Of a stretch of 64,000 nucleotides of DNA, positions 3,914 through 64,000 are shown piece after piece. Made by a program: the position numbers and the translations under genes. Below the pieces are notes generated by a model. It saw only the letters and a list, made by a program, of their open reading frames with translations, made no database searches and was not told the DNA's origin. This stretch comes from Macrostomum hystrix (taxonomy: Eukaryota > Animalia > Platyhelminthes). Position 1 is the stretch's first letter, and the number at the start of each line of letters is the position of its first letter. The stretch is from assembly GCA_950097015.1 (NCBI GenBank), contig CATNEN010000002.1:2170001-2234000 (forward strand), in the 5' to 3' direction.

Positions 3914-4142
3914 AAATACTGTACGCAGGCACACGCTCACACAGGGTGTGTACATCTGCCCTGACATTCGCATCCTCAGTCAGTGTACACTGCCATTGAG
4001 CCTTGGAGGTCGGCTCTCAAGGGCGTAAATTGCAAGACAAGACCCCCCCAGGTCTTCTCTTCGCGGCTGCGCCCGAAGCCACACATCTGTGGCCTCGCCA
4101 TGGTGCTCAGGGACCTTGGTGCAGGTGGCATTAAGCGCTCTC
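3914..4142 (-). mobile_element. tRNA-derived SINE family A, degenerate copy
   Basis: Reverse complement of the 25133-25420 element (GTACGCAGGCACACGCTCACACAGG..GTACATCTGCC, CCTTGGAGGT..GGCGTAAATTGCA, GGCCTCGCC). Confidence 0.7.
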
Positions 4143-6480: not shown

Positions 6481-7177
6481 GTTATTAAAAATTGTTATTG
6501 TAAAGTAATAGCAAATTATTGGCTATAAAAGTTGAAGTTCTAGATTAAAGCCAAAAGTAACTTTACACTCCTCTCCTGTCCTGTGCTCTCAAATCGTGAG
6601 CTGAAATCGTTGGCGTGACTCTCCAAGGACGGGACAGTCTCGGCTATAAAAATTTGAAGAATGAGTAACCGGGGAAGGGGAAGGAGATCATTTTTGAGGT
6701 TGCTGAACTCCCAGGTGCGTGCGATGAAGTTGCAGTTTGAATGGATGGTGCAAATTTGTGCCTCGCAGCAGCTCAGTCTCTGCCATTCAGGCCGTAGCCA
6801 TAAGCAACGACTCAAACCGCCCCTCCGTTACTGGCAGCCTCCACTCGCGCAGCCATTCAACCTGCTCCCTTTGTGTGCCCTGCTCTGAGCCCGTTGAGTT
6901 TCCTGTGCTCAGCTTCGTCCTCTCCCCGTTCTTCTCGTCCAGCCCCTCGTCTATTGCCGATCCTCTCCCTTCTCTACTGCCGCCCATTATTGGTTGTGCT
7001 AGTCACCCTTTGTACCTGAATTTATGCAGGCACATGGTGGCCTCTACACCACGGACTTCGCCAACGTCTGCAAACTGAGCATCTGTGCTTCCTTGGAGAC
7101 TCTAGCATCCAGACATTCCAGCTCGAGAATTTCTCGGCCTCTGCGGGGACGTCGGGGTCCCTAAACAGCTCTGAACA

Positions 7178-41349: not shown

Positions 41350-42660
41350 AGGATAGACACCCATCATGCAGGACAGACAACAAGGACAGACACCCAGGAC
41401 AGACACCCAGGACAGACACCCAGGACAGACAACAAGGACAGACACCCAGGACAGACACCCAGGACAGAAACCCAGGACAGACAACAAGGACAGACACCCA
41501 GGACAGACACCCAGGACAGACACCCAGGACAGACACCCAGGACAGACAAAAAGGACAGAAAACAAGGACAGACACCCATGCAGGACAGACAACAAGGACA
41601 GACACCCAGGACAGACACCCAGGACAGACACCCAGGACAGACAAAAAGGACAGAAAACAAGGACAGACACCCATGCAGGACAGACAACAAGGACAGACAC
41701 CCAGGACAGACACCCAGGACAGACACCCAGGACAGACACCCAGGACAGACAACAAGGACAGACAACAAGGACAGACACCCATGCAGGACAGACAACAAGG
41801 ACAGACACCCAGGACAGACACCCAGGACAGACACCCAGGACAGACAACAAGGACAGACAACAAGGACAGACAACAAGGAGAGACAACAAGGACAGACACC
41901 CAGGACAGACACCCAGGACAGACACCCCGGACAGACAACAAGGACAGACAACAAGGACAGACAACAAGGACAGACACCCATGCAGGACAGACAACAACGA
42001 CAGACAACAAGGACAGACAACAAGGACAGACAACAAGGACAGACAACAAGGACAGACAACCATGCAGGACAGACAACAACGACAGACAACAAGGACAGAC
42101 AACAAGGACAGACAACAAGGACAGACAACAAGGACAGACACCCAGGACAGACATCCAGGACAGACACCCAGGACAGACAACAAGGACAGACACCCATGCA
42201 GGACAGACAACAAGGACAGACACCCATGCAGGACAGACAACAAGGACAGACACCCATGCAGGACAGACAACAAGGACAGACACCCATGCAGGACAGACAA
42301 CAAGGACAGACAACAAGGACAGACACCCAGGACAGACACCCAGGACAGCCACCCAGGACAGACAACAAGGACAGACACCCATGCAGGACAGACAACAAGG
42401 ACAGACACCCATGCAGGACAGACAACAAGGACAGACACCCAGGACAAAAAACAAGGAAAGACAACAAGGACAGACACCCAGGACAGACACCCAGGACAGC
42501 GCCCAGGACAGACACCCAGGACAAAAAACATGGAAAGACAACAAGGACAGACACCCAGGACAGACACCCAGGACAGCGCCCAGGACAGACACCCAGGACA
42601 GCGCCCAGGACAGACACCCAGGACAGCGCCCAGGACAGACACCCAGGACAGACACCCTGT
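41350..42660. repeat. 13-nt minisatellite (CAGGACAGACACC / AAGGACAGACAAC)n
   Basis: Mixed 13-nt variants; explains the QTPRTD/CPGCLS ORFs on both strands. Confidence 0.95.
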
Positions 42661-43789
42661 CAAAAACAAGCCTCATGAAACAATGTCTCAAAAAAAGGCA
42701 ATATGAAATCGCCTTGAATGTAAGATTATTAAAGTGCAATCTCGAGTTTTCTGAGCAGGGCCGCTAAATCAAGAAAAAGACATCGACTGTTCAATTTATT
42801 CAACTGTCTCATCTGAAGTCTAATTAAGTGAGTGCCCGCATATTTGGCCTGGTTGTGGCACATTGTCTTGGACAGTTCAGATCACAGATTGACAAATCGA
42901 ACTGACAGTGCAGTGCTGAAATCCTTCAAGATGCGTGGCACTTTTCTCCAAAGTCACCTGGGAGCTGCGCATGGTTTGCTCTGCAATTTTTTTATCCAAT
43001 TCCTCTATGCAAAGTCGAGGCATCACGAATTGAAGAAATGTTTTATGACGAGGTCATTGGCCCTAGGCCTCGGTTTGATCCATGTAGGAATAATATTTTA
43101 ACGAGCTCGCGGGGAGCAGTATAACTGCTCATTGAGTGCAGCTGTGTGTAGCTAGTCTTGAAGACTTGATAATCCTTAAATCTAAGTGAATAAAGGGATT
43201 AATTATTATTAATTATTAGTCTCTTTGATGGTCACCTTGATGAAATTTATATATACTAAATTTTAATTGTCCAATACTGCGATTATTCAGAATTTTGTAC
43301 TTTAGCTTTTCTGAGCAAAATGAAAACCTAATCGATTTGTGTTTAGCCAAAACTGTAAAAAAACATGAAATCATGTAATCATGACAATACTTTAGAAAAA
43401 AATATGGATCTGAACATGGGCTCCAAACAGACCTATTGTAAAGTATGTCTTTTTATCTAGGTCAGCTGATTACGCAGTTCTCACAAGCATCGCGTCGAAT
43501 TGTGAATGCACAGGTGTAGAATAATGGATGCTAACAAGCAAATGCTGTGTTGTCAGGTAAGGACAAACTTTTAATTGTAGGCTTTGAGTTCACCTGGAGC
43601 TCTGGATATTCAATCACCTGTCTGTCTGCAAAAATTGTACACATAAAAAATGATACTATGCATCTGTGGAGTGCAATAACATGTTATCACCTAATCGAGG
43701 GGATTGAAAAGTTCAGGAGCTTAGTTGATAGCCCTATCATTTTAAGTTGTTCAGGTGTTAAAAGAATGTTTTTCATCGGAGAATTGCGT

Positions 43790-45270
43790 AGCTCTCAGTA
43801 GCTCTGAGTAGCTCTGAGTAGCTCTGAGTAGCTCTGAGTAGCTCTGAGTAGCTCTGAGTAGCTCTGAGTAGCACCGAGTAGCTCTGAGTAGCTCTAAGTA
43901 GCTCTAAGTAGCGCCGAGTAGCTCTGAGTAGCTCTGAGTAGCGCCGAGCAGTTCTGAGTAGCTCTGAGTAGCGTCGAGCAGTTCTGAGTAGCTTTGAGTA
44001 GCGCCGAGCAGTTCTGAGTAGCTCTGAGTAGCGTCGAGCAGTTCTGAGTAGCTCTGAGTAGCTCTGAGTAGCTCTGAGTAGCTCTGACTAGCACCGAGTA
44101 GCTCTGAGTAGCTCTGAGTAGCTCTGAGTAGTTCTGAGTAGCTCTGAGTAGTTCTGAGTAGCTCTGAGTAGTTCTGAGTAGCTCTGAGTAGTTCTGAGTA
44201 GCTCTGAGTAGTTCTGAGTAGCTATTTTTGTTCTGAGTAGCTCTGAGTAGCTCCGAGTAGCTCTGAGTAGCTCTGAGTAGCGCCGAGTAGCTCTGAGTAG
44301 CTCTGAGTAGCGCCGAGTAGCTCTGAGTAGCTCTAAGTAGCTCTGAGTAGCTCTGAGTAGCTCTGAGTAGTTCTGAGTAGCTCTGAGTAGCTCTGAGTAG
44401 TTCTGAGTAGCTCTGAGTAGTTCTGAGTAGCTCTGAGTAGTTCTGAGTAGCTCTGAGTAGTTCTGAGTAGCTATTTGTGTTCTGAGTAGCTCTGAGTAGC
44501 TCCGAGTAGCTCTGAGTAGCTCTGAGTAGCGCCGAGTAGCTCTGAGTAGCTCTGAGTAGCGCCGAGTAGCTCTGAGTAGCTCTGAGTAGCGCCGAGTAGC
44601 TCTGAGTAGCTCTGAGTAGCTCTGAGTAGCGCCAAGTAGCTCTGAGTAGCTCTGAGTAGCTCTGAGTAGCTCTGAGTAGCGCCGAGTAGCTCTGAGTAGC
44701 GCCGAGTAGCTCTGAGTAGCGCCGAGTAGCTCTGAGTAGCTATTTTGTTCTGAGTAGCTTTTTTTGTTCTGAGTAGCTCTTGTAGTTCTGAGTAGCTCTG
44801 AGTAGCGCCGAGCAGTTCTGAGTAGCTCTGAGTAGCGCCGAGCAGTTCTGAGTAGCTCTGAGTAGCGCCGAGCAGTTCTGAGTTGCTCTGAGTAGCGCCG
44901 AGCAGTTCTGAGTAGCTCTGAGTAGCGCCGAGCAGTTCTGAGTAGCTCTGAGTAGTTCTGAGTAGCTCTGAGTAGTTCTGAGTAGCTATTTTGTTCTGAG
45001 TAGCTTTTTTTGTTCTGAGTAGCTCTTGTAGTTCTGAGTAGCTCTGAGTAGTTCTGAGTAGCTCTTGTAGTTCTGAGTAGCTCTGAGTAGTTCTGAGTAG
45101 CTCTTGTAGTTCTGAGTAGCTCTGAGTAGTTCTGAGTAGCTCTTGTAGTTCTGAGTAGCTCTGAGTAGTTCTGAGTAGCTCTTGTTGTTCTGAGTAGCTC
45201 TGAGTAGCGCCGAGTAGCTTTGGGTAGTTTTATGCAGCTCTGAGTAGCTCTGAGTAGCTCTAAGTAGATA
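43790..45270. repeat. 10-nt minisatellite (GAGTAGCTCT)n
   Basis: ~145 units with GCGCC/GTTCT variants. Confidence 0.95.
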
Positions 45271-46014
45271 TGACATATGAGTAGTATTTTATTGCTCCGA
45301 ACAGTTTTGGGGACTTCTACGTATAGCTCTAAGTAGCTCTGAGCAGCTCTGTGCAGTTCAGTAGAATGCAGACTTGTGTCGCACAGAACGCTTCCTTGTT
45401 TTAAAAAATTTCCGATTCTCGCTACAGGGTCAACAGTTTGCACTGCTCTTCTGTCTGGTTTGCTGAGCAGCAGAGCCAAGCCCATTTATTATCTTCCATG
45501 GCTGATTTCCACATTGGATATAGAGTGCATTCTTTAGTGTGCTTTGACCAGTGATGTGTTCAACCAGCTACAGCCGTGGCCTTATTACAGTCTTTAGAGT
45601 TGGACGAAATTTTGCAGCTGAATATCTGTTTGACGAGTAGGCACATCTCGCATTTTCAATTACCTGTTTGGTAATTGCCTGTTTACCTGTTTACCTGTTT
45701 ACCTGTTTGGAGAAAGTGTGGTTGCAGCATCGGTTTTTTATACGAAAGTCAGGAGTTCGAATTTCAGCTAAATAAAAACTATTTGTGTCGTTAGGCAATA
45801 CACTTCAGTCCCCCTTGCTTCAGTTCAACCAGCTGTGATTTTAGTTTCAACTGGACAGACTAGCTGAGGTAACAATTCGGTTGACTTTTGGCAGCAATCC
45901 CCAGTCCATGGACTGGGCAGCTGTACACAGCCTTTTAGCTGCGACCAAGCCTTCGGCTGTAAATCTGTACATCTATGGTGTATGGTGAATAGTATTTTGC
46001 TTGAAGACATTCTG

Positions 46015-47141: not shown

Positions 47142-48347
47142 ATGTCACGAAATATCGAGCTGCCGGACATCGCCGACACCTCGCTGGTCGACAACTCGAC
47201 TGGCCTTCGCCTGACGTCTCCGCCAGCTTCTGCGCACGTTTTCGACAGCGTCGCTTGGAGTGCAACCCTCGCCTTCTCGATATTCGCCGTGCTGCTCAAC
47301 GCGTACCTGCTGAGGGCCCTGACTCAGAGGCGTCAGACGGCTCGACATGGCAAGACCAACAGCCTGCTGGTGCTGACTGGCTCTGAGATTGCCCTGACGC
47401 TGTTCCTGTCCTGCTATCTCGTGGTCTATCGGGCGTCCGGTCGACTGCACCTCGAATCCGGCTTCCACACGCTGCACATAGTTCGCAACTACTGGATACT
47501 GGCCATCACCGCCTGCCGCCTCGTGGTCATTGTGCAGCCGTTCCGAGCCACCCAGGCGGGAGGCTTCTTCGGAGCGCGTCGTCAAGCGCAGACTCTCACA
47601 GGGATTGTTGTCCTGGCCACGGCTGTGGTTTGGATCAGCGCCGCGGCCACGGCCTCCGGTCAGATTCCTGTCCAGCTGATCAACCAGAGCGACGTCCGCC
47701 TCACCTTCGATGCGGCCGGCCTCATCGCCGCCAATTTCAGTCGGGTTTTCCACAACGCGAACCTGGTGGACCGAGGTCTCGCGATTCGGGACGCAGTCAG
47801 GCCGGGTCTGATTCGCTACGCTCTCGTGGTCTCATTTGGAAGCATCCTTCCCGGCAGCTGCATCACCGTGATGGGCGCCAAGATGGCTAAGGAGTTGCGT
47901 CGCAGCGTGTTCAACCGCGCCTCGTCCCGGCGGTCCTGCAAGCTGGTGCTGCTGCTCTCTCTCGGCTTCGTCGTCTGCGAGTTTCCGTTCGCCGTGGCGC
48001 ACATCGTGACAGTGGCGTACGTCCTGTGCACCAGCGGCCCAATTAGCGAGCTCGACATTGTCATGGAGCGAATGGAGCGAGTGGCTAGCTGGGGCCTCGC
48101 CTTCGTGCCGGTGGACTCCTGCCTGAACTTTGTCATCCTGATGCGTTACAGCAAGAGCTTCCGGCGGGCGCTTCGCGGCAGCTGCAAGAAGGCGACATTA
48201 GGCGGCGATGGCACCAACGGAGGTGGCATCGGTGGCGGCAGCGGTGGTGGACAGTCGCGCGGAGCGGCTAACAACGGTGAACAGGTGGCGCTGCAGATGC
48301 ACAGCTGGAACTGCAGCAGGAGTGAACTGCAACTGCAGCAGGAGTGA
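47142..48347 (+). CDS. Divergent single-exon class A GPCR-like 7TM protein, 401 aa
   Basis: Seven hydrophobic segments; TM1 LLN, TM3 TACRLVVIVQPF, TM5 ILP, TM6 VCEFPF, TM7 DSCLNFVIL, helix-8 SKSFRRAL; GC-rich codon usage like the other exons. Confidence 0.8.
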   Translation: MSRNIELPDIADTSLVDNSTGLRLTSPPASAHVFDSVAWSATLAFSIFAVLLNAYLLRALTQRRQTARHGKTNSLLVLTGSEIALTLFLSCYLVVYRASGRLHLESGFHTLHIVRNYWILAITACRLVVIVQPFRATQAGGFFGARRQAQTLTGIVVLATAVVWISAAATASGQIPVQLINQSDVRLTFDAAGLIAANFSRVFHNANLVDRGLAIRDAVRPGLIRYALVVSFGSILPGSCITVMGAKMAKELRRSVFNRASSRRSCKLVLLLSLGFVVCEFPFAVAHIVTVAYVLCTSGPISELDIVMERMERVASWGLAFVPVDSCLNFVILMRYSKSFRRALRGSCKKATLGGDGTNGGGIGGGSGGGQSRGAANNGEQVALQMHSWNCSRSELQLQQE

Positions 48348-48823: not shown

Positions 48824-51800
48824 ATGGAACTAGAAGCAGACACAATGGAACTAGAAGCAGACACAATGGAACTAGAAGCAGACACAATGGAACTAGAAGC
48901 AGACACCATGGAACTAGAAGCAGACACAGTGGAACTAGAAGCAGACACAGTGGAACTAGAAGCAGACACAGTGGAACTAGAATCAGACACAGTGGAACTA
49001 GAATCAGACACAGTGGAACTAGAAGCAGACACAGTAGAACTAGAAGCAGACACAGTGGAACTAGAAGCATACACAGTAGAACTAGAATCAGACACAGTGG
49101 AACTAGAAGCAGACACAGTGGAACTAGAATCAGACACAGTGGAACTAGAAGCAGACACAGTAGAACTAGAAGCAGACACAGTGGAACTAGAATCAGACAC
49201 AGTGGAACTAGAAGCAGACACAGTGGAACTAGAAGCAGACACAGTGGAACTAGAAGCAGACACAGTAGAACTAGAAGCAGACACAGTAGAACTAGAATCA
49301 GACACAGTGGAACTAGAAGCAGACACAGTGGAACTAGAAGCAGACACAGTGGAACTAGAATCAGACACAGTGGAACTAGAAGCAGACACAGTGGAACTAG
49401 AAGCAGACACAGTGGAACTAGAAGCAGACACAGTGGAACTAGAATCAGACACAGTGGAACTAGAAGCAGACACAGTGGAACTAGAAGCAGACACAGTGGA
49501 ACTAGAAGCAGACACAGTGGAACTAGAAGCAGACACAGTGGAACTAGAAGCAGACACAGTGGAACTAGAAGCAGACACAGTGGAACTAGAAGCAGACACA
49601 GTGGAACTAGAAGCAGACACAGTGGAACTAGAAGCAGACACAGTGGAACTGGAAGCAGACACAGTAGAACTAGAATCAGACACAGTGGAACTAGAAGCAG
49701 ACACAGTAGAACTAGAATCAGACACAGTGGAACTGGAAGCAGACACAGTGGAACTAGAAGCGGACACAGTGGAACTAGAATCAGACACAGTGGAACTAGA
49801 ATCAGACACAGTGGAACCAGAATCAGACACAGTGGAACTAGAAGCAGACACAGTAGAACTAGAAGCAGACACAGTGGAACTAGAAGCAGACACAGTGGAA
49901 CTAGAATCAGACACAGTGGAACTAGAATCAGACACAGTGGAACTAGAATCAGACACAGTGGAACTAGAAGCAGACACAGTAGAACTAGAAGCAGACACAG
50001 TGGAACTAGAAGCATACACAGTAGAACTAGAAGCAGACACAGTGGAACTAGAAGCAGACACAGTGGAACTAGAATCAGACACAGTGGAACTAGAAGCAGA
50101 CACAGTAGAACTAGAAGCAGACACAGTGGAACTAGAATCAGACACAGTGGAACTAGAATCAGACACAGTGGAACTAGAAGCAGACACAGTAGAACTAGAA
50201 GCAGACACAGTGGAACTAGAAGCATACACAGTAGAACTAGAAGCAGACACAGTGGAACTAGAAGCAGACACAGTGGAACTAGAATCAGACACAGTGGAAC
50301 TAGAAGCAGACACAGTGGAACTAGAAGCAGACACAGTGGAACTAAAAGCAGACACAGTGGAACTAGAAGCAGACACAGTGGAACTAGAATCAGACACAGT
50401 GGAACTAGAATCAGACACAGTGGAACTAGAATCAGACACAGTGGAACTAGAAGCAGACACAGTGGAACTAGAATCAGACACAGTGGAACTAGAAGCAGAC
50501 ACAGTGGAACTAGAAGCAGACACAGTGGAACTAGAAGCAGACACAGTGGAACTAGAAGCAGACACAGTGGAACTAGAAGCAGACACAGTGGAACTAGAAT
50601 CAGACACAGTGGAACTAGAAGCAGACACAGTAGAACTAGAAGCAGACACAGTGGAACTAGAATCAGACACAGTGGAACTAGAATCAGACACAGTGGAACT
50701 AGAAGCAGACACAGTAGAACTAGAAGCAGACACAGTGGAACTAGAAGCATACACAGTAGAACTAGAAGCAGACACAGTGGAACTAGAAGCAGACACAGTG
50801 GAACTAGAATCAGACACAGTGGAACTAGAAGCAGACACAGTGGAACTAGAAGCAGACACAGTGGAACTAAAAGCAGACACAGTGGAACTAGAATCAGACA
50901 CAGTGGAACTAGAATCAGACACAGTGGAACTAGAAGCAGACACAGTGGAACTAGAATCAGACACAGTGGAACTAGAAGCAGACACAGTGGAACTAGAAGC
51001 AGACACAGTGGAACTAGAAGCAGACACAGTGGAACTAGAAGCAGACACAGTGGAACTAGAAGCAGACACAGTGGAACTAAAAGCAGACACAGTGGAACTA
51101 GAAGCAGACACAGTGGAACTAGAAGCAGACACAGTGGAACTAGAAGCAGACACAGTGGAACTAGAAGCAGACACAGTGGAACTAAAAGCAGACACAGTGG
51201 AACTAGAAGCAGACACAGTGGAACTAGAATCAGACACAGTGGAACTAGAAGCAGACACAGTGGAACTAGAAGCAGACACAGTGGAACTAGAAGCAGACAC
51301 AGTGGAACTGGAAGCAGACACAGTGGAACTAGAATCAGACACAGTGGAACTAGAATCAGACACAGTGGAACTAGAATCAGACACAGTGGAACTAGAAGCA
51401 GACACAGTGGAACTAGAATCAGACACAGTGGAACTAGAATCAGACACAGTGGAACTAGAATCAGACACAGTGGAACTAGAAGCAGACACAGTGGAACTAG
51501 AATCAGACACAGTGGAACTAGAAGCAGACACAGTGGAACTAGAAGCAGACACAGTGGAACTAGAAGCAGACACAGTGGAACTAGAAGCAGACACAGTGGA
51601 ACTAGAAGCAGACACAGTGGAACTAAAAGCAGACACAGTGGAACTAGAAGCAGACACAGTGGAACTAGAATCAGACACAGTAGAACTAGAAGTAGACACA
51701 GTGGAACTAGAAGCAGACACAGTGGAACTAAAAGCAGACACAGTGGAACTAGAAGCAGACACAGTGGAACTAGAAGCAGACACAGTGGAACTAGAAGCAG

Positions 51801-52365
51801 ACACAGTGGAACTAGAAGCAGACACAGTGGAACTAGAAGCAGACACAGTGGAACTAGAAGCAGACACAGTGGAACTAGAAGCAGACACAGTGGAACTAGA
51901 AGCAGACACAGTGGAACTAGAAGCAGACACAGTGGAACTAGAATCAGACACAGTGGAACTGGAAGCAGACACAGTGGAACTAAAAGCAGACACAGTGGAA
52001 CTAGAATCAGACACAGTGGAACTAGAAGCAGACACAGTGGAACTAAAAGCAGACACAGTGGAACTAGAAGCAGACACAGTGGAACTAGAATCAGACACAG
52101 TGGAACTAGAATCAGACACAGTGGAACTAGAATCAGACACAGTGGAACTAGAAGCAGACACAGTGGAACTAGAAGCAGACACAGTGGAACTAGAAGCAGA
52201 CACAGTGGAATTAGAAGCAGACACAGTGGAACTAGAATCAGACACAGTGGAACTAGAAGCAGACACAGTGGAACTAGAAGCAGACACAGTAGAACTAGAA
52301 GCAGACACAGTGGAACTAGAAGCAGACACAGTGGAACTAGAAGCAGACACAGTGGAACTAGAAGT
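48824..52365. repeat. 21-nt satellite (GTGGAACTAGAAGCAGACACA)n, ~168 units, with higher-order blocks
   Basis: GCATAC variant recurs at 210- and 525-bp spacing (50012, 50222, 50747). Confidence 0.97.
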
Positions 52366-54119
52366 ACATGTTAACGAGAAACATGTTGAGACTGCTCTCA
52401 TTTTTTACAACGTGTGGTTTTTCAACACAAGTGTAAAATATTTGGAAGTGCAACGTCCGGATTTAATAAAAACATATTTTGACAGGTCTTGTCATGATTC
52501 TATTCGTTCCTGAAAGACGAAGACTTAGCTTCACAATGCTTGCATGGATAAATAATTTTATTAAAGATCTTATTGATCAAAAAACTTTGTCCTAACCAGG
52601 TGCACTTTTAGTAAAGAAATGCAAAAGCAACCACTTTTGGTGGCCGTTGAAAATGTAACTACAAAAAAGTTAAATATGTGTTTGAAGAAATATGAACAAG
52701 CTTTTTTATGTCAAGAAATGCCTCTGAAATGTCAGGACAGATTTCAAAGAATTTTAGACAGGTTTCAAAGAAATAGAGACCGATTTCTAAGAAACCAAGA
52801 CACATTTCTTCGAAATCGAGACATTTACGACAGTCAATATGTAATTTTACCTCGATACTTGAAAAGCAGTATCGATTTCTGAACTCATACTAGCTTCCCA
52901 GATGGAACCAGATTTAGAAGAAAACGATAGAAATTTCTAAGAAATTTAGACATACTTCTAGGAAAGGGAGGCATCGGTGAGGAATCGACACATTAGTTTT
53001 TTTAAGGCAGGACTATTTAAATTTTAGAAATGCTTAGACATATCGGGGTATGTCAAAAAGTTAAGAGACATTTCTAAGAAATCTAGAGAAGTTTCTAAGA
53101 AATGTAAAATCAAAAGTAATTTTTTTAAATCAAGTTCTGAAGAACATAATGCTTGTGTCGTTAGAATAGAGCCGTATATAACTATATATTAATTTTGAAA
53201 CTGTAAAGTTCACTGCTATGAAAAAGCCTGTAATAATTGCGACCTTGAAAACAGAATTCCTTTGTGTAGGAAATATCACTTTGAATGATAATTAAAATTA
53301 TTAAGCTTGCAGTTTAATCAGGAAGCTTGCGAGAACTCAAAATAATGCCTGTGTGCAAGCTACAAGCAGTCACAATGCCGCCGCTCTTGTTTGCTGGCTT
53401 GTCCAGTTTCTTTAGCGAAAGAAATCTTCATTAACAAAGCAAAGCATGTTGACGTGTACTAATTAGGGCTCGTTACCATGACAACCGTATGACTCTTTTG
53501 TCTTCAAAGACTATTTTTTCAAATTCGAAATTAATTCCAATCAGGACACATTGTGCTGAAGTATTTATAGACGCGTCGAGAAATTCAGCAATTTGGAAAG
53601 AATGCCCACTTTTCCATCAGCTCTTGTAGCAGTGGAAATGACCTGGGGGGGCTATTTCCCCCTGGGGAAGGCCATGGAGTTCAAATATTTTTTCCGTGTT
53701 CTGGAACTTCATGACGATTGGTTGAATAATTTGGTAGATAAAGGAAAAGAAAATTGTTGGGATTTTGAAATACTTACTGTGAACTGCAACTTCAAAATCA
53801 ATTTTTAGATTCAAAACCCAAGACTTGTCCTTCTACGGGGATTTGCATCCAGAATTTCTAAAGGGATCACTGCTGAAATCAGTATTTCGCCATAGGTTTT
53901 CATAATCGTATTAAATTATTGTCAATTTATTCTCTATAATCGTAGAATCTAATAACTTATTCTCTTTTTTATTCCTTAAATCTCATGCGTCTATATTTTA
54001 AGCTGGATTAGCAGCATTGCCAAATATGCTGCATAACAAGGTCATTTTCTAGGAAACGCGACTTCATACAGTCTTACAATAGCTATTCAGGGGCTATTGC
54101 AGTACACGAGAAATAAGAT

Positions 54120-54900: not shown

Positions 54901-56134
54901 TGAAAATCACATGTCATATGTGAAATTTAGGCTTAGCATCTGAGGTGTGAATGGACATCAGAAGCGTTTAATTAAGTTTGTTAAAATGCATGAGAACAAT
55001 AGCGGTGCAAAACACAGGTGCTTTAATTATGGCTTCAAACTGACAACAATAATAACAAGATTTCGTACTAGAATTTGAGGAAGGTGAAGAAAAATAAAAG
55101 GAAAAAAGTTTTTCAAAAGCCGGTGGAAAAAACGAGCATCTGCCCCCCAAAGCTCAAACCTCTAACACCTTTCTTTAGCAGCAAGCAACAACAAACCCAA
55201 GGTCGATTTTGACTAGCAAAGAAAAAATTTCCACTCCTAAAGAGGCTGGAACTGCAACGAAGCCCTGCCCCCCAGTCTGAGGTATCCAAATCGTTGTTTC
55301 AATTTATTTTTCCATGCAGCGTTGCCAGAATCAAATCAAAGACTGACCAGACGCAAGGATACAAAGCTACAGCCTTTGCGCGATTAGAAAACTAAAATGT
55401 AGTACGTAAGATAACAAACAAGAGTGCAAAAATCTTCAACTTACTACTTACTGATAAGTAGTAATAATGAACGGATTTTCCTGAGAGTATTTTTTCATCA
55501 TCAACTGATTTCAAAGGCCTCGATTAATTTAGAAATTAACTTCTAGACAATTGGTCGATTCGCTGATTTACCAGGAACTGTGCTAGAAACCACAATGTGG
55601 TAATTATTTACCTATTGTTCTAATCACTAATTGTTACTTACTGATACTTACTTATTAACGTTGAAAGTTCACGGGGGCATTAAAAAACGCACATTTTCTA
55701 TTTTTGTACCTCTTAAAAATTTCATCGCCATAAAAATCAAGAACACGAGCGAAAATCTTACGCTCTAACAGAAAAAAAGCTACTTCCAGAATCACAAATT
55801 ACAAATATCGGCAAACTCGAGATGTACAACAATTGTCTGGTGGGTTGCCTGGTGGCAAAACAAAAAAGGCATTATTGTTTCTGCTCAGAAAACTTCATTA
55901 TGTGAGTATGTCAGTTATTATTGTTGATTGATAATAAATTATTACAACCAATTGTTATTATAACCATGTATTATAACCATTGTTATTATAATTGTCCATG
56001 GACTGAACAGCTCTACACAACCTTTGAAAGGGCCACTAAATAGCAGGTCGTTGTGAGAAAATAGATTGTTTTTAAATAAAAATAAATTTCTTAGATCATC
56101 TCAAACTACTTACTGCTGCTTTTCTCTCTAAAGG

Positions 56135-58680
56135 TCTCAATCCGAAACTAAATCCCAATCCGAATCCGAAACTAAACCCCAATCCGAATCCAAAACTTAA
56201 CCCCAATCCGAATCCGAAATAAAACACCAATTCGAATCCGAAACTAAATCCCAATCCGAATCCGAAACTAATCCCCAATTCGAATCCGAAACTAAACCCC
56301 AATCCGAATCCGAAACTTAACCCCAATCCGAATCCGAAACTAAACCCCAATCTAAATCCGAAACTAATCCCCAATTCGAATCCGAAACTAAACCCCAATC
56401 CGAATCCGAAACTAAACCCCAATCCGAATCCGAAACTAAACCCCAATCCGAATCCGAAAATAAACCCCAATCCGAATCCGAATCCGAAACTAAACCCCAA
56501 TCCGAATCCGAAACTAAACCCCAATTCGAATCCGAAACTAAACCCCAATCCGAATCCGAAACTAAACCCCAATTCGAATCCGAAACTAATCCCCAATCCG
56601 AATCCGAAACTAAACCCCAATCCGAATCCGAAACTAAACCCCAATCCGAATCCGAAACTAAACCCCAATCCGAATCCGAAACTTAACCCCAATCCGAATC
56701 CGAAACTAAACCCCAATCTAAATCCGAAACTAAACCCCAATCCGAATCCGAAACTAAACCCCAATCCGAATCCGAAACTAAACCCCAATCCGAATCCGAA
56801 ACTAAATCCCAATTCGAATCCGAAACTAAATCCCAATTCGAATCCGAAACTAATCCCCAATCCGAATCCGAAACTAAACCCCAATCCGAATCCGAAACTA
56901 ATCCCCAATCCGAATCCGAAACTAATCCCCAATCCGAATCCGAAACTAAACCCCAATCCGAATCCGAAACTAAACCCCAATCCGAATCCGAAACTAAACC
57001 CCAATTCGAATCCGAAACTTAACCCCAATCCGAATCCGAAACTAAACCCCAATCTAAATCCGAAACCAAACCCCAATCCGAATCCGAAACTAAACCCCAA
57101 TCCGAATCCGAAACTAAACCCCAATCCGAATCCGAAACTAAATCCCAATTCGAATCCGAAACTAAATCCCGATTCGAATCCGAAACTAAATCCCAATTCG
57201 AATCCGAAACTAATCCCCAATTCGAATCCGAAACTAATCCCCAATTCGAATCCGAAACTAAATCCCAATTCGAATCCGAAACTAAACCCCAATTCGAATC
57301 CGAAACTAAATCCCAATTCGAATCCGAAACTAAACCCCAATTCGAATCCGAAACTAAATCCCAATTCGAATCCGAAACTAAATCCCAATCCGAATCCGAA
57401 ACTAAATCCCAATCCGAATCCGAAACTAAACCCCAATTCGAATCCGAAACTAAATCCCAATTCGAATCCGAAACTAAACCCCAATTCGAATCCGAAACTA
57501 AATCCCAATTCGAATCCGAAACTAAACCCCAATTCGAATCCGAAACTAAACCCCAATTCGAATCCGAAACTAAATCCCAATTCGAATCCGAAACTAAATC
57601 CCAATTCGAATCCGAAACTAAATCCCAATTCGAATCCGAAACTAAATCCCAATTCGAATCCGAAACTAAATCCCAATTCGAATCCGAACCTAATCCTAAT
57701 TCGAATCCGAAACTAATCCCCAATTCGAATCCGAAACTTAACCCCAATCCGAATCCGAAACTAAACCCCAATTCGAATCCGAAACTAAACCCCAATCCGA
57801 ATCCGAAACTAAACCCCAATCCGAATCCGAAACTTAACCCCAATCCGAATCCGAAACTAATCCCCAATTCGAATCCGAAACTAAATCCCAATTCGAATCC
57901 GAAACTAATCCCCAATTCGAATCCGAAACTAAATCCCAATTCGAATCCGAAACTAATCCCCAATTCGAATCCGAAACTAAACCCCAATCCGAATCCGAAA
58001 CTAAACCCCAATCCGAATCCGAAACTAAACCCCAATCCGAATCCGAAACTAAACCCCAATCCGAATCCGAAAATAAACCCCAATCCGAATCCGAATCCGA
58101 AACTAAACCCCAATCCGAATCCGAAACTTAACCCCAATCCGAATCCGAAACTAAACCCCAATCCGAATCCGAAACTAAACCCCAATCCGAATCCGAAACT
58201 AAACCCCAATCCGAATCCGAAACTTAACCCCAATCCGAATCCGAAACTAAACCCCAATCCGAATCCGAAACTAAACCCCAATCCGAATCCGAATCCGAAA
58301 CTAAACCCCAATCCGAATCCGAATCCGAAACTAAACCCCAATCCGAATCCGAAACTAAACCCCAATCCGAATCCGAAACTTAACCCCAATCCGAATCCGA
58401 AACTAAACCCCAATCCGAATCCGAAACTAAACCCCAATCCGAATCCGAAACTAAACCCCAATCCGAATCCGAAACTAAACCCCAATCCGAATCCGAAACT
58501 AAACCCCAATCCGAATCCGAATCCGAAACTAAACCCCAATCCGAATCCGAAACTTAACCCCAATCCGAATCCGAAACTAAACCCCAATCCGAATCCGAAA
58601 CTAAACCCCAATCCGAATCCGAAACTAAACCCCAATCCGAATCCGAAACTAAACCCCAATCCGAATCCGAAACTAAACTA
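56135..58680. repeat. 24-nt satellite (AATCCGAAACTAAACCCCAATCCG)n
   Basis: ~105 units; same unit restarts at 63913; explains the GFSFGFGL ORFs. Confidence 0.97.
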
Positions 58681-60147
58681 CTTAAATCCGTTGAGACCCA
58701 ACTTCAACGCCAGCTTGGATTGTCAAAGTTTAAATTTTCAAGTAGACTATCGTTAAATTTAAGCGTTAACTGAATTCAATCTCTAAATTTAGTTTGCATC
58801 GCGAAATCAAAGCATGAAGAGTTTTTTAAATTTTGTCTGTCGTAAGTTGTCTTGCAAAAAGTGTTTTTTACGCTTACAAAAATTTTCTTTGAGATTCAAA
58901 ATGAAAAAGCGCAACCTTTAAATGATAATTATTGAGAAAAAAATGCATATCAAGTCCACAATGTCTGCTTTATTGCTTTGTTAGTCACGCCATCTTAAGC
59001 CAATAAACCTACACCCTTGCAAGCCCCCTCCCCCTACAGCTCACATTGCTTCGAAAACAACTCAGAAAACGTGCTTCAATATGAACGGCATTAGAGAATT
59101 TTCTGTCCTTTAATTAGCATTTGAGCACGCTCCTGCCATTATCTACGGTGGAGCGTCTTCTGGAAGATGTGGCTCCGGACAATGACCCTATGCAATCTAA
59201 GCGAGCTTAAACGTAAGCTTTGAATAGCTTTTCATACTATCATTTGAGCAGTTTCTTTTCATTGCAATGTGAGTTACGATGACAGTCCTGAGAGTTCTCA
59301 ACTTGGCTAGGCAGCAAGCCTAGGCATTGAAGTTTTTCAATTCTAGAAAATGGCCAAGAATTTATTTGTTTTGCTGCTTCATTTCGTCTCACCGACGGTG
59401 CACGTGTTTTCTACGCTTCTTGGATGGTTTAGCATTATTAATTGAGGTTTCAAATTCTGTCTTTGTCACTGACATTTAATGACGTTGAAAAGGACTGCAA
59501 TTTTAAACTTACTATAACCCGCCATAGTGGCGCCCCCTCATAGTGGCGCCCCCTCATAGTGGCTCAGGGACCTTGGTGCATACCGCTCTACCATTCACTC
59601 AGATTAATTCGGATGTAGAAGAAAAGATATAAAAAACGTGTTCCGTGTCTTTAAACAGGAAAATGCAGTCATTGCTCTCCGTATCTATCCATGCATTTTC
59701 TTCCAGTGACACAAGCATTGAACTGATTTGTAATTGGACTCGTGGTCGATTGTCTTCGCAAAAAGTCATGACTCATTTCGAATTCCTGTTGGCATCTTTG
59801 CTTTTAGACCGAAGCCAGAATTTTCCAGAACCAGATGGCAAACAAACCAAGCAGCTTTTGCTGTTTTCCAATGCATGTCAAGCCATTCCGTTTGGTTTGT
59901 AATAGAGATAATAGAAAAAAAGATTCGCAAAGTTTTCAATGTCATTGGCCGCCCAAAGTGCACAATGCAGTTTGAGTCCAACTCAGTCATGTGCGAGCAA
60001 AGCTTCTCACTCGAAGAAAGTTTTTCAGGAGTGAATTGCCTGCAAGCGGTCGCACTCATTAACACCCGACCCAGAAGCACATGCCGCCACCCACAACGAG
60101 CAAAGTATGCAGCGACATTCGGGTTGACGAAAAACGTGCTAAAAATG

Positions 60148-60157
60148 GTCTATAAAT
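60148..60157 (+). promoter_or_regulatory. TATA box GTCTATAAAT of peptide gene 1
   Basis: 110 bp upstream of the ATG at 60258; identical decamer at 63011. Confidence 0.6.
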
Positions 60158-60257: not shown

Positions 60258-60497
60258 ATGAAGTGGCAAGTCGCCGCCTTCCTGTTCGTCTGTGTGGCCG
60301 TCGCCGTGATGGCCGGACCGGCTGCCCCCGAGTCCGACGAGGAGCTGCTGTCGGACCTGGCCGAGCTGCAGCAGGCCAGCGAGATCGAGGACACCCCGCT
60401 GGGACTGGAGGCCAAGAGCCGCCTGAAGCGCAAGGTCAAGCGCTACCTGAAGAGGGCCGGATTCCGCAGGCGCTTCATCAGGAAGGTCGTCGGTTGA
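60258..60497 (+). CDS. Secreted prepropeptide 1 (signal + acidic pro + cationic peptide), putative antimicrobial peptide, 79 aa
   Basis: MKWQVAAFLFVCVAVAVMAG-PAAPESDEELLSDLAELQQASEIEDTPLGLEAK-SRLKRKVKRYLKRAGFRRRFIRKVVG*; GC3-rich codons; TATA upstream. Confidence 0.85.
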   Translation: MKWQVAAFLFVCVAVAVMAGPAAPESDEELLSDLAELQQASEIEDTPLGLEAKSRLKRKVKRYLKRAGFRRRFIRKVVG

Positions 60498-61770
60498 ACA
60501 GCACGATCTGGCGATTCGGACACTTTTACCTGTACACGCCACTTCCAAAGAACTACCGCAGTCACTAAAGAGAGTTTGTAAAACAACACGATTGGTGGAA
60601 TTTATTTATGCCGAAGACAGAAAAATGTCTGATGGAAATATAACTGTAGCTATACTTCAACACATAATGTAATGAAAACACAAATCATGTTCATTTATTG
60701 CTACAACAATTTATTATTATTAAAAAATTCTGTTTATATGCTGAATTTACATAGATATGAGTTCATAAGCTTAGGAACTGCAAAGCTGTACTACGAGTTG
60801 AGAACCTTACTTCAAATTCTCCTCCAAATTGCTCTGTATTCTCGTAACTTCTGTAGCGAATCCATATTGCTTCAATAATACAAAAGTTAACAATATAATG
60901 AACAATAAGAGCCGACATGGTTACATGATGAAATTGTGTGAGCAGAAAAATGATGCCTATAGCGTGGTGGTTTTTTCTAGAGACACCTCAACGAGAATCG
61001 TTGAATATCTCGACGATGTTAATGCTTTAGATTTTCATGGCGATTAATTGACTATTTTGAGAAATACAGAAGAAGAAAATGCGCTACTTGAAATACCCCG
61101 TGGTGTTTCTACTGCTAAAAGGTTGTTTTATTCACCAGAAAGATAGTACAACCTACAAGGATTCCGAAGAAGCCTGTCAACCTACGGACTCGGAAATCAC
61201 TTACGTTATATCGCTCGCGAGACTTGAATGTAAGAATAAAGTCAAAATACTTAATTATTTATTGACACTAAGTAAAGCATTCATGCTTTCAAACTAATTA
61301 AAAGTTAAATCAAGAACTTCCTCGCCCGGGACCATCATTCTATTGGTGCAGGGCGTTGGCAGCAGGCTTCAGACTGAAGCACGTAATTTAGAAGCTTTGC
61401 TTAACCTTCTAAAATGCTCGAAGGTGAACTCATGCTGTAGACATCCTCCTAACTACATGTACCCTTGCTGAACTCCTCAGGTACTGTAAAGCGAGATGCC
61501 AGGACAGTCCACCGGCTTGCACTGCGATTGGTTGGTAAATGTGCTTTGGATTCTGCTAAAGATACTTTCAAGGGCATTGGAACATTGTCAGCAGGGAACT
61601 GGCAGAAACTGGAAGCATCGGCCTGCCATCTTTCTGGAACACATTGACTCACCGATACATGGAAGGTCATTGTTGAGAAACATGTCGATAAATTTGAGGC
61701 AGCTTAGCTGGTATCCTAGAGCATCTCTGATCGACAATTCAGCTTAGTCGAGTCCAGGACAGCAAGCGTC

Positions 61771-62121
61771 ATGAAGTGGCAGGTCGCAACTCTGTTGCTC
61801 GCCTGCCTGGCGGTGGCCACGAAGGCAAAGCCGAGCGCCGCTGATCGCAAAGAATCCGATGGACTCAGAGGATCCGGAGACACTCCAGCAGCAGGCCTAT
61901 TTGAGGTGTCCGAGAAGCCGAGACCGACAGGACATGACGTATCGAAGAAGCCCCGACAGCCGGAACCAACGCGCGAGCCCCGACATCCGACAGCAAAGCT
62001 GCAGCTATCGCGCTGCTCATATGAAGGCTGCGTACGGCTGTTCAGTCCATGGACTGGGGGGACGCCACACCCACCCTCAATTACCCCAGCTGATGCTGGT
62101 TCCCATTTAACAGCTTGGTGA
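61771..62121 (+). CDS. Secreted prepropeptide 2 (MKWQ paralog) with SINE-derived C-terminus; possibly pseudogenizing
   Basis: MKWQVATLLLACLAVATKA signal; pro-region ESD..GDTPAAGLFEVSEK aligns with EDTPLGLEAK of gene 1; codons from 62026 onward come from SINE B. Confidence 0.65.
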   Translation: MKWQVATLLLACLAVATKAKPSAADRKESDGLRGSGDTPAAGLFEVSEKPRPTGHDVSKKPRQPEPTREPRHPTAKLQLSRCSYEGCVRLFSPWTGGTPHPPSITPADAGSHLTAW

Positions 62122-62230
62122 ACTGAAGAAATGCAGACCTACGTGTCTTACTAAAGGAAGAAAAAATTCAGTTGATTCCGGAATCGAACCTCCGACGTTC
62201 GAGTCATGAGTTCTACACTCTAAGCACTTG
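62026..62230 (-). mobile_element. tRNA-derived SINE family B copy inserted antisense at the 3' end of peptide gene 2
   Basis: B box GGTTCGATTCC (62180-62190, minus); body matches 29368-29578, starting GGCTGCGTAC at both. Confidence 0.7.
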
Positions 62231-63010
62231 CTTCAACCCAGCTTAATTAGTGTCTCATTAGGAGCTTCATTGCAAAAATCGGCAGTGAGGCTCGTACATC
62301 GTACGAAATTTTCTTCTTCGTAAATAACGGAATAGCTAATCGATGTTGTACCCACAATGGGTACATGGTATTGAATTGCAATATACATTTTTGTTCTATA
62401 TAACCTGATACATTGTCAGAAAAACTTTCTGAAATACCACAAGTGATTTGTTATCGATAACTCTTGTGATTGTGAGAATAACAATCCATGCTGTATATTT
62501 TACAGTATTTTTATCGAGTGGATTAGCGGATGCTAAGCAATGGTAATATTCGAGTTTTCAAGTTCTTTTTCTGTCAAGAAAAGAGTTAATACCCGTAATT
62601 ATACCTGTTTGGAAATTTCCAGTCTGGTAAGAAAGCTTAAAGCGTGGAAAAACACTAGAAATGGTCTGCAAAAAAGAAGTGACTGCTGCGCAAGAAATAC
62701 ATTTCTGAGCAATACGATGACAGCCAATGGCATCGCCAGTGTGGCGCCACTGCAGTATGAGATAGCCCAGACACTGGCGAGCAGACTCGCTTGTTGAGAC
62801 CAGGACAATATGGGCATACTTCCGCGGTCACAAAAAGAGGCTATTTTTCAAACTCTAACTTAATTCTATTGTATTTGTTACTTTTTTGAAGGTGAATCAA
62901 GACGGCTTTTTAGTTGGTCCTTCAAAGTATGCAGCTTTCTGAGCACGTTTTCTGGGGTTTTCGCCTCACGTTGCCGCTCCAGTCGCAGCTAGCCCACCCG
63001 GGACTTTCGA

Positions 63011-63020
63011 GTCTATAAAT
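63011..63020 (+). promoter_or_regulatory. TATA box GTCTATAAAT of peptide gene 3
   Basis: 100 bp upstream of the ATG at 63111; AATAAA at 63450-63455 downstream of the stop. Confidence 0.6.
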
Positions 63021-63110
63021 GGTGACAGTAAGAAGCAGCCCAAAATGTTCTCAAGCCGAGTTTAATAAAGCCCCCTCGAGTCGATCTTCTTCAAAGAAAC
63101 GAAAACGACA

Positions 63111-63332
63111 ATGAAGTGGCAGTTTGCTCTTGGCCTCCTGCTGTGCGTGGCCCTAGCTGTCTACGCCAGCCCAGCTGATCAGAACGACGAAGATGAAGAG
63201 GTCGCCGCCGCCCTCGCCGACATGGCCGAGCCGGCCCAGGCCGATGAGAACGAGGCGCCCGAAGCCAAGTTCCGGTTCCGAGTCCGCAGGCGTCGCCGCT
63301 TCTACCGGGGATACTACTTCTATGGCAAGTAA
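63111..63332 (+). CDS. Secreted prepropeptide 3 (signal + acidic pro + Arg/aromatic peptide), putative antimicrobial peptide, 73 aa
   Basis: MKWQFALGLLLCVALAVYAS-PADQNDEDEEVAAALADMAEPAQADENEAPEAK-FRFRVRRRRRFYRGYYFYGK*; TATA and polyA signal flank it. Confidence 0.88.
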   Translation: MKWQFALGLLLCVALAVYASPADQNDEDEEVAAALADMAEPAQADENEAPEAKFRFRVRRRRRFYRGYYFYGK

Positions 63333-63849
63333 GCATCTCGGACAGCACTATGGACCGACACTGCGACACCTGATCGAACTAACCCAAACAGTGCACAGTA
63401 AACTTAAAAACACTCAGCTACTTCCATTTCTAGGAGTCATATGGCTACTAATAAAGTTCTGAATCAGTCAGATGGTTTACGACCTTTGTACTCGCAGATA
63501 ACATCCTACATTGCTGAGACATTGCATGTGAAACTTACCGATGTAATAAAAAATTGATAAGAAAAATAGCTGGCTTTTAGTCAATAAAATAATTACATAG
63601 TAAATCTGCACTTTCTAATTGATTTTAAGTTCTTTCAGAGTCATATTAAATCTTTGTGACTTGTCGAGCCTTAACTGTAGTAATCCATGATTTGACCTTC
63701 ACCAGCCTAAAAGACGTTGAAGGAGCATCCATGCTATGAAAGAGCATTCTGTTGCTTACGAACAAAAATTATACTCTTATGAAAAAGCATAGAAACTGTA
63801 ACATCCTTTCAAAAATGGAACAAACTGTTTTGTAGGAGAAAACAATAAT

Positions 63850-63912
63850 CAAGACGGTCCCGCTGATGCGCTGTCAGGGGTGCTACAGGGCGACACACTT
63901 GCGCCGTTTCTA
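63850..63912 (+). mobile_element. Non-LTR retrotransposon reverse-transcriptase fragment
   Basis: Translates QDGPADALSGVLQGDTLAPFL, the RT motif GVLQGDTLAP typical of RTE-like LINEs; cut off by the satellite. Confidence 0.6.
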
Positions 63913-64000
63913 TCCGAAACTAAACCCCAATCCGAATCCGAAACTTAACCCCAATCCGAATCCGAAACTTAACCCCTATCTGAATCCGAAACTTAACCCC
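63913..64000. repeat. 24-nt satellite, same family as 56135-58680 (runs off window)
   Basis: TCCGAAACTAAACCCCAATCCGAA units. Confidence 0.9.

Follow-up and report, generated by a model that had tools for sequence, protein, structure and literature searches.

The three open reading frames of Table 1 probably, though only just, make up a Macrostomum-specific tandem of two intact genes (g1 and g3) and one decayed copy (g2) that would encode secreted prepropeptide precursors, referred to here as the MKWQ family. They lie in a window of 64 kb, the whole stretch of DNA that was analysed, which is not human but comes from a Macrostomum flatworm congeneric with M. lignano. As an earlier note on this DNA had described, they are small, co-oriented and spaced at 1.3–1.5 kb (start-to-start distances of 1513 and 1340 nt). 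All three open with exactly the same 11-mer, ATGAAGTGGCA, of which there is no other exact copy in the 64 kb; with up to one mismatch it is found at five sites, against 1.5 expected in the window. A 64-nt direct repeat spans the start and signal region of the cluster, a Cys at residue 12 and a Pro at residue 21 are invariant in g1, g2, g3 and the M. lignano protein P0121, and the family HMM scores g3 at 89.6 bits, g1 at 78.3 bits and g2 at 68.2 bits. The pro-pieces also end as had been noted, with EVSEK in g2 and EAK in the other two. A search of the whole window, translated in all six frames, with tblastn and with the family HMM found no further family copies.

Table 1. Positions of the cluster and of neighbouring elements in the 64-kb window.
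Feature	Position	Strand	Remarks
TATA box GTCTATAAAT, g1	60148–60157	+	110 nt before ATG
g1 coding sequence	60258–60497	+	79 aa, uninterrupted
g1 signal	about 60258–60317	+	
g1 pro-piece	60318–60416	+	charge -9, ends Glu-Ala-Lys
g1 tail	60417–60494	+	26 aa, Lys/Arg, charge +13, ends Gly
Poly(A)-like ATTAAA, g1	60719–60724	+	only such hexamer within 700 nt past the stop; sequence match only
Variant TATA box GTCGATAAAT, g2	61684–61693	+	87 nt before ATG; one-base variant
g2 open reading frame	61771–62121	+	116 aa, decayed family copy
SINE-like repeat, dispersed	61984–62237		about 250 bp, tRNA-like T-arm on minus strand
TATA box GTCTATAAAT, g3	63011–63020	+	100 nt before ATG
g3 coding sequence	63111–63332	+	73 aa, uninterrupted
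g3 signal	about 63111–63170	+	
g3 pro-piece	63171–63269	+	charge -11, ends Glu-Ala-Lys
g3 tail	63270–63329	+	20 aa, Arg/aromatic, charge +9, ends Gly-Lys
AATAAA, g3	63450–63455	+	118 nt past the stop
24-nt satellite array	56139–58678		upstream of cluster
Second array of the same satellite	63912–64000		downstream of cluster; runs off the window

It can be seen from Table 1 that g1 and g3 have the same layout, an acidic pro-piece followed by a cationic tail with a terminal Gly or Gly-Lys, in agreement with the earlier note, and that the charges of the two parts roughly cancel. Across the family the pro-piece is a stretch of 33–38 residues (33 in g1 and g3) of Cys-free, acidic, low-complexity sequence. 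The two proteins are clearly similar over their whole length (z 16) and when the signal is left out (z 6.8); their tails, which had been described as unrelated, are indeed so (z -0.4). The description of the g1 tail as amphipathic was not borne out, as its helical hydrophobic moment was not above that of shuffled sequences (p 0.12), and in the tails in general the amphipathic moment was not significant. In the AF2 model of g1 (pLDDT 69) the protein is all-helical, with helices at residues 5–18, 24–42, 47–67 and 71–78, such that a pro-piece helix is followed by the tail helices, and the g3 tail is predicted to be unstructured.

Both g1 and g3 look like real, intact genes. GC at third codon positions is 0.91 in g1 and 0.77 in g3, it is low at second positions, and this pattern is found in one frame only. 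Each has a polyadenylation-like hexamer downstream (Table 1), and in the M. lignano relatives AATAAA likewise lies close behind the stop codon. A TATA box of the form GTC[T/G]ATAAAT is common to g1, g2 and g3 some 100 bp upstream; the 10-mer GTCTATAAAT occurs three times in the window, where 0.16 would be expected, and it is also found 99–106 nt upstream of the M. lignano family genes. The third copy in the window (53563–53572, minus strand) has no plausible small gene beside it, and a CACGT-containing motif upstream of several of the family promoters was statistically too weak to claim. That g1 and g3 are no genes at all, but frames left open by chance where the DNA is GC-rich, is extremely improbable. 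Long open reading frames do occur in several frames within the GC-rich stretches of the window, and in g2 two frames that are each free of stops over more than 110 codons overlap, as might be expected of chance frames; however, the single-frame codon signature of g1 and g3 argues against such an origin, as do the changes that separate the g3 signal from those of M. lignano (0–1 nonsynonymous against 7–9 synonymous), the conservation of the TATA box in two species, and the M. lignano gene models, which were built from RNA-seq only (PMC5730564), so that the relatives in that species are transcribed. We reject this explanation for g1 and g3; over the 3′-most two thirds of g2 it may apply.

The earlier note had counted g2 as the third gene of the family, intact and with a peptide rich in Pro and Arg, and this did not stand up. 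Past the signal, coding periodicity is absent in all frames, with GC of.65/.64/.50 at codon positions 1/2/3, and the genes of the window have third-position GC of.72–.80. Resemblance to the family is limited to about 28 residues, and only over the signal region is third-position GC high and the likeness to the family retained. The pro-piece has lost its acidity (charge -2), the tail has a charge of +4 over 67 residues, there is no terminal Gly, and neither AATAAA nor ATTAAA occurs within 700 nt downstream. The last third of the frame (about 45 codons) is covered by the SINE-like repeat, other copies of which lie at 29365–29571, 22337–22444 and 257–324 of the window and in M. lignano loci L004–L007; the g2 copy was called neither by Rfam (E up to 1) nor by ARAGORN, and Rfam at gathering threshold gave no match in the whole window. 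The pieces of g2 were compared separately, with the repeat left in place, and an ancestral pro-piece in another frame was rejected when the pieces in alternative frames did not outscore shuffled sequences (z below 1). We conclude that g2 is evidently not a third peptide type but a decayed copy whose frame extends into a SINE-like repeat.

The family had been proposed to be lineage-specific, and relatives were found only in M. lignano. When 1.84 billion representatives were searched exhaustively with a profile, P0121 was the single match, and a profile word search returned P0121 along with P0122, of which P0123 and P0124 are cluster mates; P0122–P0124 carry the MKWQ signal too. The relatives share one layout, with an MKWQ signal, an acidic pro-piece that runs to E-x-K or Q-A-K and an Arg/aromatic tail, in most cases with Gly as its last residue, and their coding sequences are uninterrupted. 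They were deposited as hypothetical proteins. The helminth screen of Irvine et al. (2023) lists some of them as AMP-like: its group fAMP-LP 71 consists of BOX15_Mlig026130g1-3 and its group fAMP-LP 116 of BOX15_Mlig008283g1 and Mlig025063g1 (PMC10414684, S5 file). The same file records positive SignalP calls for the M. lignano members and, for their tails, positive calls by 73–91% of AMP predictors, and both groups were discarded at the ‘Same genome’ step because each came from a single genome (PMC10414684). Further M. lignano homologues are BOX15_Mlig027113g1/Mlig019489g1 and Mlig022283g1. The group 116 signal is identical to that of g3, and the counterpart of g1, as judged by eye, is fAMP-LP 71 (BOX15_Mlig026130). 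We conclude that fAMP-LP 71 and 116, which the paper split as unrelated, are best read as one family with a common signal, pro-piece and promoter. The statement that this is not a described family thus holds in that it had not been recognised as one family, although members were already listed in those two groups.

The arrangement of the genes differs between the two species. Exons of neighbouring genes are 81–88% identical between M. lignano and the species of the window; within 10 kb flanks, each M. lignano family gene stands alone or beside a fragmented copy, unlike the three copies inside 3.1 kb seen here. One split M. lignano copy has its two pieces in loci L004 and L006.

Constraint falls unevenly along the precursor. 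The g3 signal is identical to those of P0121 and P0124 at 19–20 of 20 residues, with a synonymous proportion (pS) of 0.47–0.61 and a nonsynonymous proportion (pN) of 0–0.02 against M. lignano; pN is 0.25–0.31 in the pro-piece and about 0.3, with many gaps, in the tail. These comparisons indicate that purifying selection is very strong on the signal and weaker on the acidic pro-piece, and that the basic tail turns over fast while a high positive charge and the terminal Gly are retained. Tails differ between species by substitutions, by repeat gain or loss and by earlier stops, and near-identical M. lignano copies likewise differ in their tails, where repeats have been gained or lost and a stop comes earlier. 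The proposal of a conserved signal and pro-piece with a divergent cationic tail is upheld, and the layout recurs in the M. lignano relatives. Its stronger form, hypervariable tails, is true of the paralogues, which differ greatly, but a g1-type tail core is recognisable by eye across the two species. Rapid tail turnover and restriction to the genus would also be expected of reproductive secreted peptides (seminal-fluid or otherwise sexually selected), in which the tails change through sexual conflict and not in response to microbes, and Macrostomum reproductive genes are reported to be fast-evolving (PMC7336406). We nevertheless regard a reproductive role as doubtful, since the g1-type tail core appears conserved and six family gene IDs were all absent from 17 supplementary files of that study (PMC7336406); the latter is weak evidence, because those files may be incomplete and ID formats can differ.

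Searches revealed no homologue of the family among cathelicidins, frog precursors and conotoxins, or in Pfam or PDB. A Pfam scan of the g1, g2 and g3 proteins (E up to 10) gave sub-threshold noise only, neither g1 nor the family profile had a meaningful sequence match in PDB, and a word-based protein search with g1 alone as query gave no match. Neither g1, g3 nor the receptor gene near 47 kb of the window had an exact entry in the protein collection, which indicates that the proteins of the source genome are not in that collection. Family gene IDs, accessions and signal sequences went unmentioned in the main texts searched, and family gene IDs were absent from the supplements of M. lignano expression studies.

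The gene architecture is nevertheless of a familiar type. Cathelicidins likewise have a conserved pro-region before a variable cationic C-terminal peptide; however, theirs is a cathelin-like domain of about 100 residues with four conserved Cys, which is absent here (no Pfam match), whereas the pro-piece of the MKWQ family is short and Cys-free and the coding sequence uninterrupted. In frog-skin precursors of the preprodermaseptin type, an acidic spacer separates a highly conserved signal from a very variable cationic peptide, frequently with a C-terminal Gly that allows amidation, and the genes form multigene clusters. That layout is common to both, but sequence homology is absent (the Pfam frog signal/propeptide models were unmatched), and the frog spacer ends in Lys-Arg where that of the MKWQ family ends in E-A-K or E-x-K, the frog genes have two coding exons where the coding sequence here is uninterrupted, and the frog tails are amphipathic Lys helices where the tails here are Arg/aromatic. 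A conotoxin-type Cys framework is also absent, the tails of g1, g3, P0121 and P0122–P0124 being without Cys. In spider precursors of the latarcin type, as in the MKWQ family, a signal and an acidic pro-piece lead into a linear cationic peptide that lacks Cys and is frequently Gly-terminated, and Glu precedes the basic cut site. According to Kozlov and Grishin, the spider processing quadruplet motif reportedly requires Arg at -1 and Glu at -2 to -4; the MKWQ family has Glu at -2 or -3 yet departs from this motif, as every member has Lys at -1. This resemblance would be one of mechanism only, homology being absent, and to our knowledge Macrostomum has no venom apparatus. The myticalins of mussels are a lophotrochozoan multigene family of linear, Arg/Pro/Tyr-rich cationic peptides with an anionic pro-region, but that region follows the peptide, whereas in the MKWQ family it precedes it, and flatworms are reported to be without myticalin homologues (PMC10414684).

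Flatworm FMRFamide-like and NPF precursors carry a conserved amidated motif, often in multiple copies between dibasic sites; in the MKWQ family, the residues before the terminal Gly differ from paralogue to paralogue and no motif copies are repeated. Neuropeptide or peptide-hormone precursors, in which convertases would cut at dibasic sites and the Gly would give a short amidated signalling peptide, might be expected to show the signal peptide, the dibasic and multibasic runs and the C-terminal G or GK that we observe. The window also contains G protein-coupled receptor genes (1321–2964 and 47142–48347), which for this purpose amounts to co-location only. We consider such precursors quite unlikely, as the conservation is the reverse of what they would show, with signal and pro-piece conserved and the would-be active end different in each paralogue, as repeated copies of a conserved motif are absent, and as the residues before the Gly are neither conserved nor of the RF-amide type. 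C-termini of that type are known from flatworms.

We favour a host-defence role for the MKWQ family, which is plausible on the sequences compared here. The signal peptide would send the precursor into the secretory pathway, where the charge of the polycationic tail (+8 to +19) would be balanced by that of the acidic pro-piece (-9 to -15) while the precursor is moved and stored. Proteolytic cleavage would then follow, either behind the conserved Glu-x-Lys or at the multibasic runs, an amide would be formed from the terminal Gly, and the freed peptide, rich in Arg/Lys and aromatic residues, would act on polyanionic targets, most likely microbial membranes. Two points count against the proposed processing: Glu-x-Lys is not a canonical convertase site, and convertase cuts at every dibasic pair would leave very short tail pieces. 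The lack of a significant amphipathic moment in the tails and the predicted disorder of the g3 tail also weigh against the host-defence reading. AMP predictors favour any short cationic peptide, a caveat on the 73–91% votes for the M. lignano tails. We only infer an antimicrobial, toxic or seminal-fluid function.

The composition of the tails would also suit polycations with a structural or packaging role, in which peptides rich in Arg and Tyr would condense polyanionic secretions (eggshell material, mucus, or rhabdite or adhesive granules) through charge and cation-pi contacts without killing microbes. Arg is abundant in the g3-type and M. lignano tails, together with Tyr, Phe or His; these tails lack an amphipathic pattern and are predicted to be disordered, their repeat-length variation resembles that of low-complexity structural peptides, and their composition recalls small mussel foot proteins. 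A packaging function seems rather improbable all the same, given that the tail of the g1 type is helical, rich in Lys/Arg and poor in aromatic residues and that a removable acidic pro-piece is more typical of bioactive peptides. Returning to host defence, we tentatively suggest that the MKWQ family may be the first genuine flatworm host-defence peptide family, with an origin independent of all known AMP families; on that reading, new tails could arise largely through slippage of Arg/Tyr codon repeats together with shifts of the stop codon.

The AMP repertoire of flatworms has been stated to be undescribed, with the usual lophotrochozoan AMP groups lacking (PMC10414684). New here are the presence of the MKWQ family in a second species, the union of two survey groups, fAMP-LP 71 and 116, as what appears to be one family, the evidence for strong purifying selection on the signal alongside turnover of the tail, and the observation that family genes can stand in tandem. 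The MKWQ family remains a candidate. An overlooked table entry has thus become a concrete candidate AMP family in a laboratory model genus, Macrostomum, for which transgenesis and good imaging are established.

Three co-oriented small ORFs (genes 1, 2 and 3) open with ATGAAGTGGCA, an exact 11-mer with no other exact copy in the window, at a unit spacing of 1513 and 1340 nt. Translation gave the prepropeptide layout described in the earlier note, namely a hydrophobic signal some 20 aa long, a pro-piece (the spacer between signal and tail) ending in EAK, EVSEK and EAK, and a C-terminal tail. The acidic pro-pieces (charge -9 in gene 1, -11 in gene 3) and the tail charges (+13 and +9) were likewise as claimed; the tails had no significant amphipathic moment, so the term 'amphipathic' for that of gene 1 is not retained. 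GTC[T/G]ATAAAT stands 87-110 nt before the ATG of each gene, and the window contains the exact TATA-box 10-mer GTCTATAAAT three times, where 0.16 would be expected. Apart from 64 nt over the start codon and signal region, no DNA is repeated between the units, so the duplications are old. A CACGT-containing motif (CACGTTTTC or similar) precedes several family promoters, inverted before gene 1 and, in the Macrostomum lignano loci L001 and L004, located some 50-60 nt ahead of the TATA box; as a promoter element it was rejected, its statistics being unconvincing (three window copies against 0.67 expected).

In the coding exons of the window, third-position GC lies at 0.72-0.80 and second-position GC is low. 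It can be seen that genes 1 and 3 reach 0.91 and 0.77 in the annotated frame only, between flanks of 0.35-0.45 GC. Gene 2 has a value of 0.85 over its first 20 codons, after which GC at the three codon positions is.65/.64/.50 and coding periodicity was found in no frame. Its likeness to the family is confined to about 28 residues, its pro-piece is not acidic, and no poly(A) hexamer lies within 700 nt after it. Approximately its last 45 codons lie inside a copy of a dispersed, SINE-like repeat. This repeat measures about 250 bp, bears a tRNA-like T-arm on the opposite strand, occurs in at least four other places in the window and at four M. lignano loci, is common to the two species at 70-79% identity, and was recognised by neither ARAGORN nor Rfam. 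We interpret gene 2 as a family copy in decay, its long ORF owing part of its length to the repeat. Genes 1 and 3 stand as intact members of one peptide family; gene 2 does not.

A search of 1.84 billion representative proteins with a profile of the signal and pro-piece found a single protein, P0121, a 'hypothetical' M. lignano protein of 85 aa; P0122 and its cluster mates P0123 and P0124 (96, 75 and 105 aa) came from a word-based profile search. All four have signals identical to that of gene 3 at 19-20 of 20 residues, an acidic 38-aa pro-piece (charge -14 to -15) ending in E-x-K, and Arg/aromatic tails of +8 to +19, with Gly as the last residue in all but the shortest variant; their coding sequences are uninterrupted, with GTCTATAAAT 99-106 nt upstream. 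Two of them form flatworm AMP-like peptide group 116 of a published helminth AMP screen, in which a further trio, BOX15_Mlig026130g1-3 (81 aa), forms group 71; both groups were SignalP positive and 73-91% positive by AMP predictors, and were discarded at the step 'Same genome' as groups seen in a single genome (PMC10414684). Group 71 appears by eye to be the counterpart of gene 1, with the same signal type, a pro-piece ending in Q-A-K and a common tail core, KRYLKR-x-G-x-RRR-x-I. The family seen in the window belongs with P0121-P0124 and groups 71 and 116. Since M. lignano GenBank gene models come purely from RNA-seq assemblies (PMC5730564), the M. lignano relatives are transcribed. The P0124 gene is followed, 2 kb further downstream in two M. 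lignano contigs, by a second family copy in pieces: a 5' fragment of seven codons is parted by about 1.6 kb of other DNA from an ORF of pro-piece and Arg/Phe tail. Locus L005 has no such copy. All three M. lignano contigs with the P0121 gene have PARP-domain genes on both sides of it.

The window itself is eukaryotic DNA with abundant minisatellites; it is not of human origin, and no part of it resembles a known toxin or an animal virus. Its ubiquitin-conjugating enzyme exon has an M. lignano protein as top match (93% identity), and the stretch 30000-38200, with UBE2K and a SPATA1_C-domain gene, is colinear with M. lignano contig NIVC01000112.1 (cf. L007), exons having 81-88% nucleotide identity and introns and non-coding DNA not being alignable; the source is therefore a Macrostomum flatworm, a congener of M. 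lignano. Tandem repeat makes up about a quarter of the window; spurious ORFs, the longest reaching 1229 codons, arise on both strands from its very long minisatellite arrays, one of them with 169 copies of a 21-nt unit. The peptide gene cluster lies between two arrays of one 24-nt satellite unit, the second of which continues past the window edge. The uninterrupted 401-aa receptor ORF had no record in the protein collection searched.

Coordinates of features in the window and at M. lignano loci
Feature	Sequence	Coordinates	Strand	Remark
Gene 1 ORF	window	60258-60497	+	79 aa
Gene 2 ORF	window	61771-62121	+	116 aa
Gene 3 ORF	window	63111-63332	+	73 aa
CACGT-containing motif	window	62942-62952, 60131-60142
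SINE-like repeat	window	61984-62237, 29365-29571, 22337-22444, 257-324, 45899-45934, 55994-56024		first copy overlaps last third of gene 2 ORF
SINE-like repeat	L004	16455-16718
SINE-like repeat	L005	19791-19981, 12829-12935
SINE-like repeat	L006	18962-19225
SINE-like repeat	L007	9390-9551
Split second family copy	L004	12108-13922		downstream of P0124 gene
Split second family copy	L006	12072-13918		downstream of P0124 gene
PARP-domain genes	L001-L003	about 1552-4065 and 14124-15148
Ubiquitin-conjugating enzyme gene	window	37251-38114	-	mariner remnant adjoins
Ubiquitin-conjugating enzyme exon	window	37251-37655	-
Mariner-type transposase remnant	window	36350-36793	+	partial DDE domain; adjoins ubiquitin-conjugating enzyme gene
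Rhodopsin-type/Srw-like G protein-coupled receptor gene	window	1321-2964	-
Rhodopsin-type/Srw-like G protein-coupled receptor gene	window	47142-48347	+	uninterrupted 401-aa ORF
TRPA-like channel gene, large	window	~7000-20400	+	multiple ankyrin-repeat exons, ion-transport domain; several intronic minisatellites
GGTT x270	window	9168-10247		TRPA-like gene intron
18-nt and 17-nt arrays	window	10916-12793		TRPA-like gene introns
Very long minisatellite arrays	window	48825-52364, 41370-42657, 43788-45267, 26400-28158
24-nt satellite	window	56139-58678, 63912-64000

The contrast drawn earlier between a conserved signal and pro-region and a variable tail was borne out most fully for the signal, where gene 3 and its M. 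lignano relatives differ by 7-9 synonymous and 0-1 nonsynonymous changes (proportions of such differences, pS 0.47-0.61 and pN 0-0.02). Conservation of the pro-piece is weaker (pN 0.25-0.31), and in the tail, where pN is about 0.3, only 19-20 of 28-47 columns are alignable; the tails of genes 1 and 3 are unrelated (z -0.4). Over their 58 prepro codons P0124 and P0123 are separated by a single synonymous change, while their tails differ by indels in Arg-codon runs and by a stop that comes earlier, the former tail end still being recognisable downstream of it; P0122 differs from P0124 by a nine-residue repeat unit. Thus the prepro part, positive charge and terminal Gly are retained as tail sequence and length change.

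The charges of pro-piece and tail nearly cancel within each precursor (net +4, -2, -7, 0, -6, +5). In the mechanism we propose, the precursor would be secreted with its tail neutralised by the acidic pro-piece and cut after Glu-x-Lys or at Arg runs; the terminal Gly would be amidated, and the freed peptide would act on polyanionic targets. AF2 models predict helices for both pro-piece and tail of gene 1 (one in the pro-piece, then several in the tail; moderate confidence, pLDDT 69) and an unstructured tail for gene 3. A host-defence role, proposed from the architecture and the predictor votes, fits best; its rivals are a reproductive secreted peptide and a structural or condensing polycation. 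A neuropeptide precursor fits worst, because conservation is lowest at what would be its active end.

Such an architecture is of a familiar kind. No Pfam family matched the three proteins, and sequence searches with gene 1 and the family profile matched no solved structure. Unlike cathelicidins the MKWQ family has no cathelin domain, unlike frog precursors no Lys-Arg cleavage site (and no homology to them), and unlike conotoxins no Cys framework; it has Lys where the spider latarcin-type motif has Arg, and in myticalins the order of pro-region and peptide is reversed. By this comparison it appears to work like these systems and to be a member of none. The family, not recognised in the earlier note as a described one, is sequence-novel as a family, although its M. 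lignano proteins had been deposited before and flagged by computation. We conclude that the family is real, restricted to the genus and made up of predicted secreted cationic prepropeptides. Two of its genes in the window are intact and one is decayed, and the window adds to it a second species, the joining of two published groups into one, a tandem arrangement and a clear gradient of constraint.
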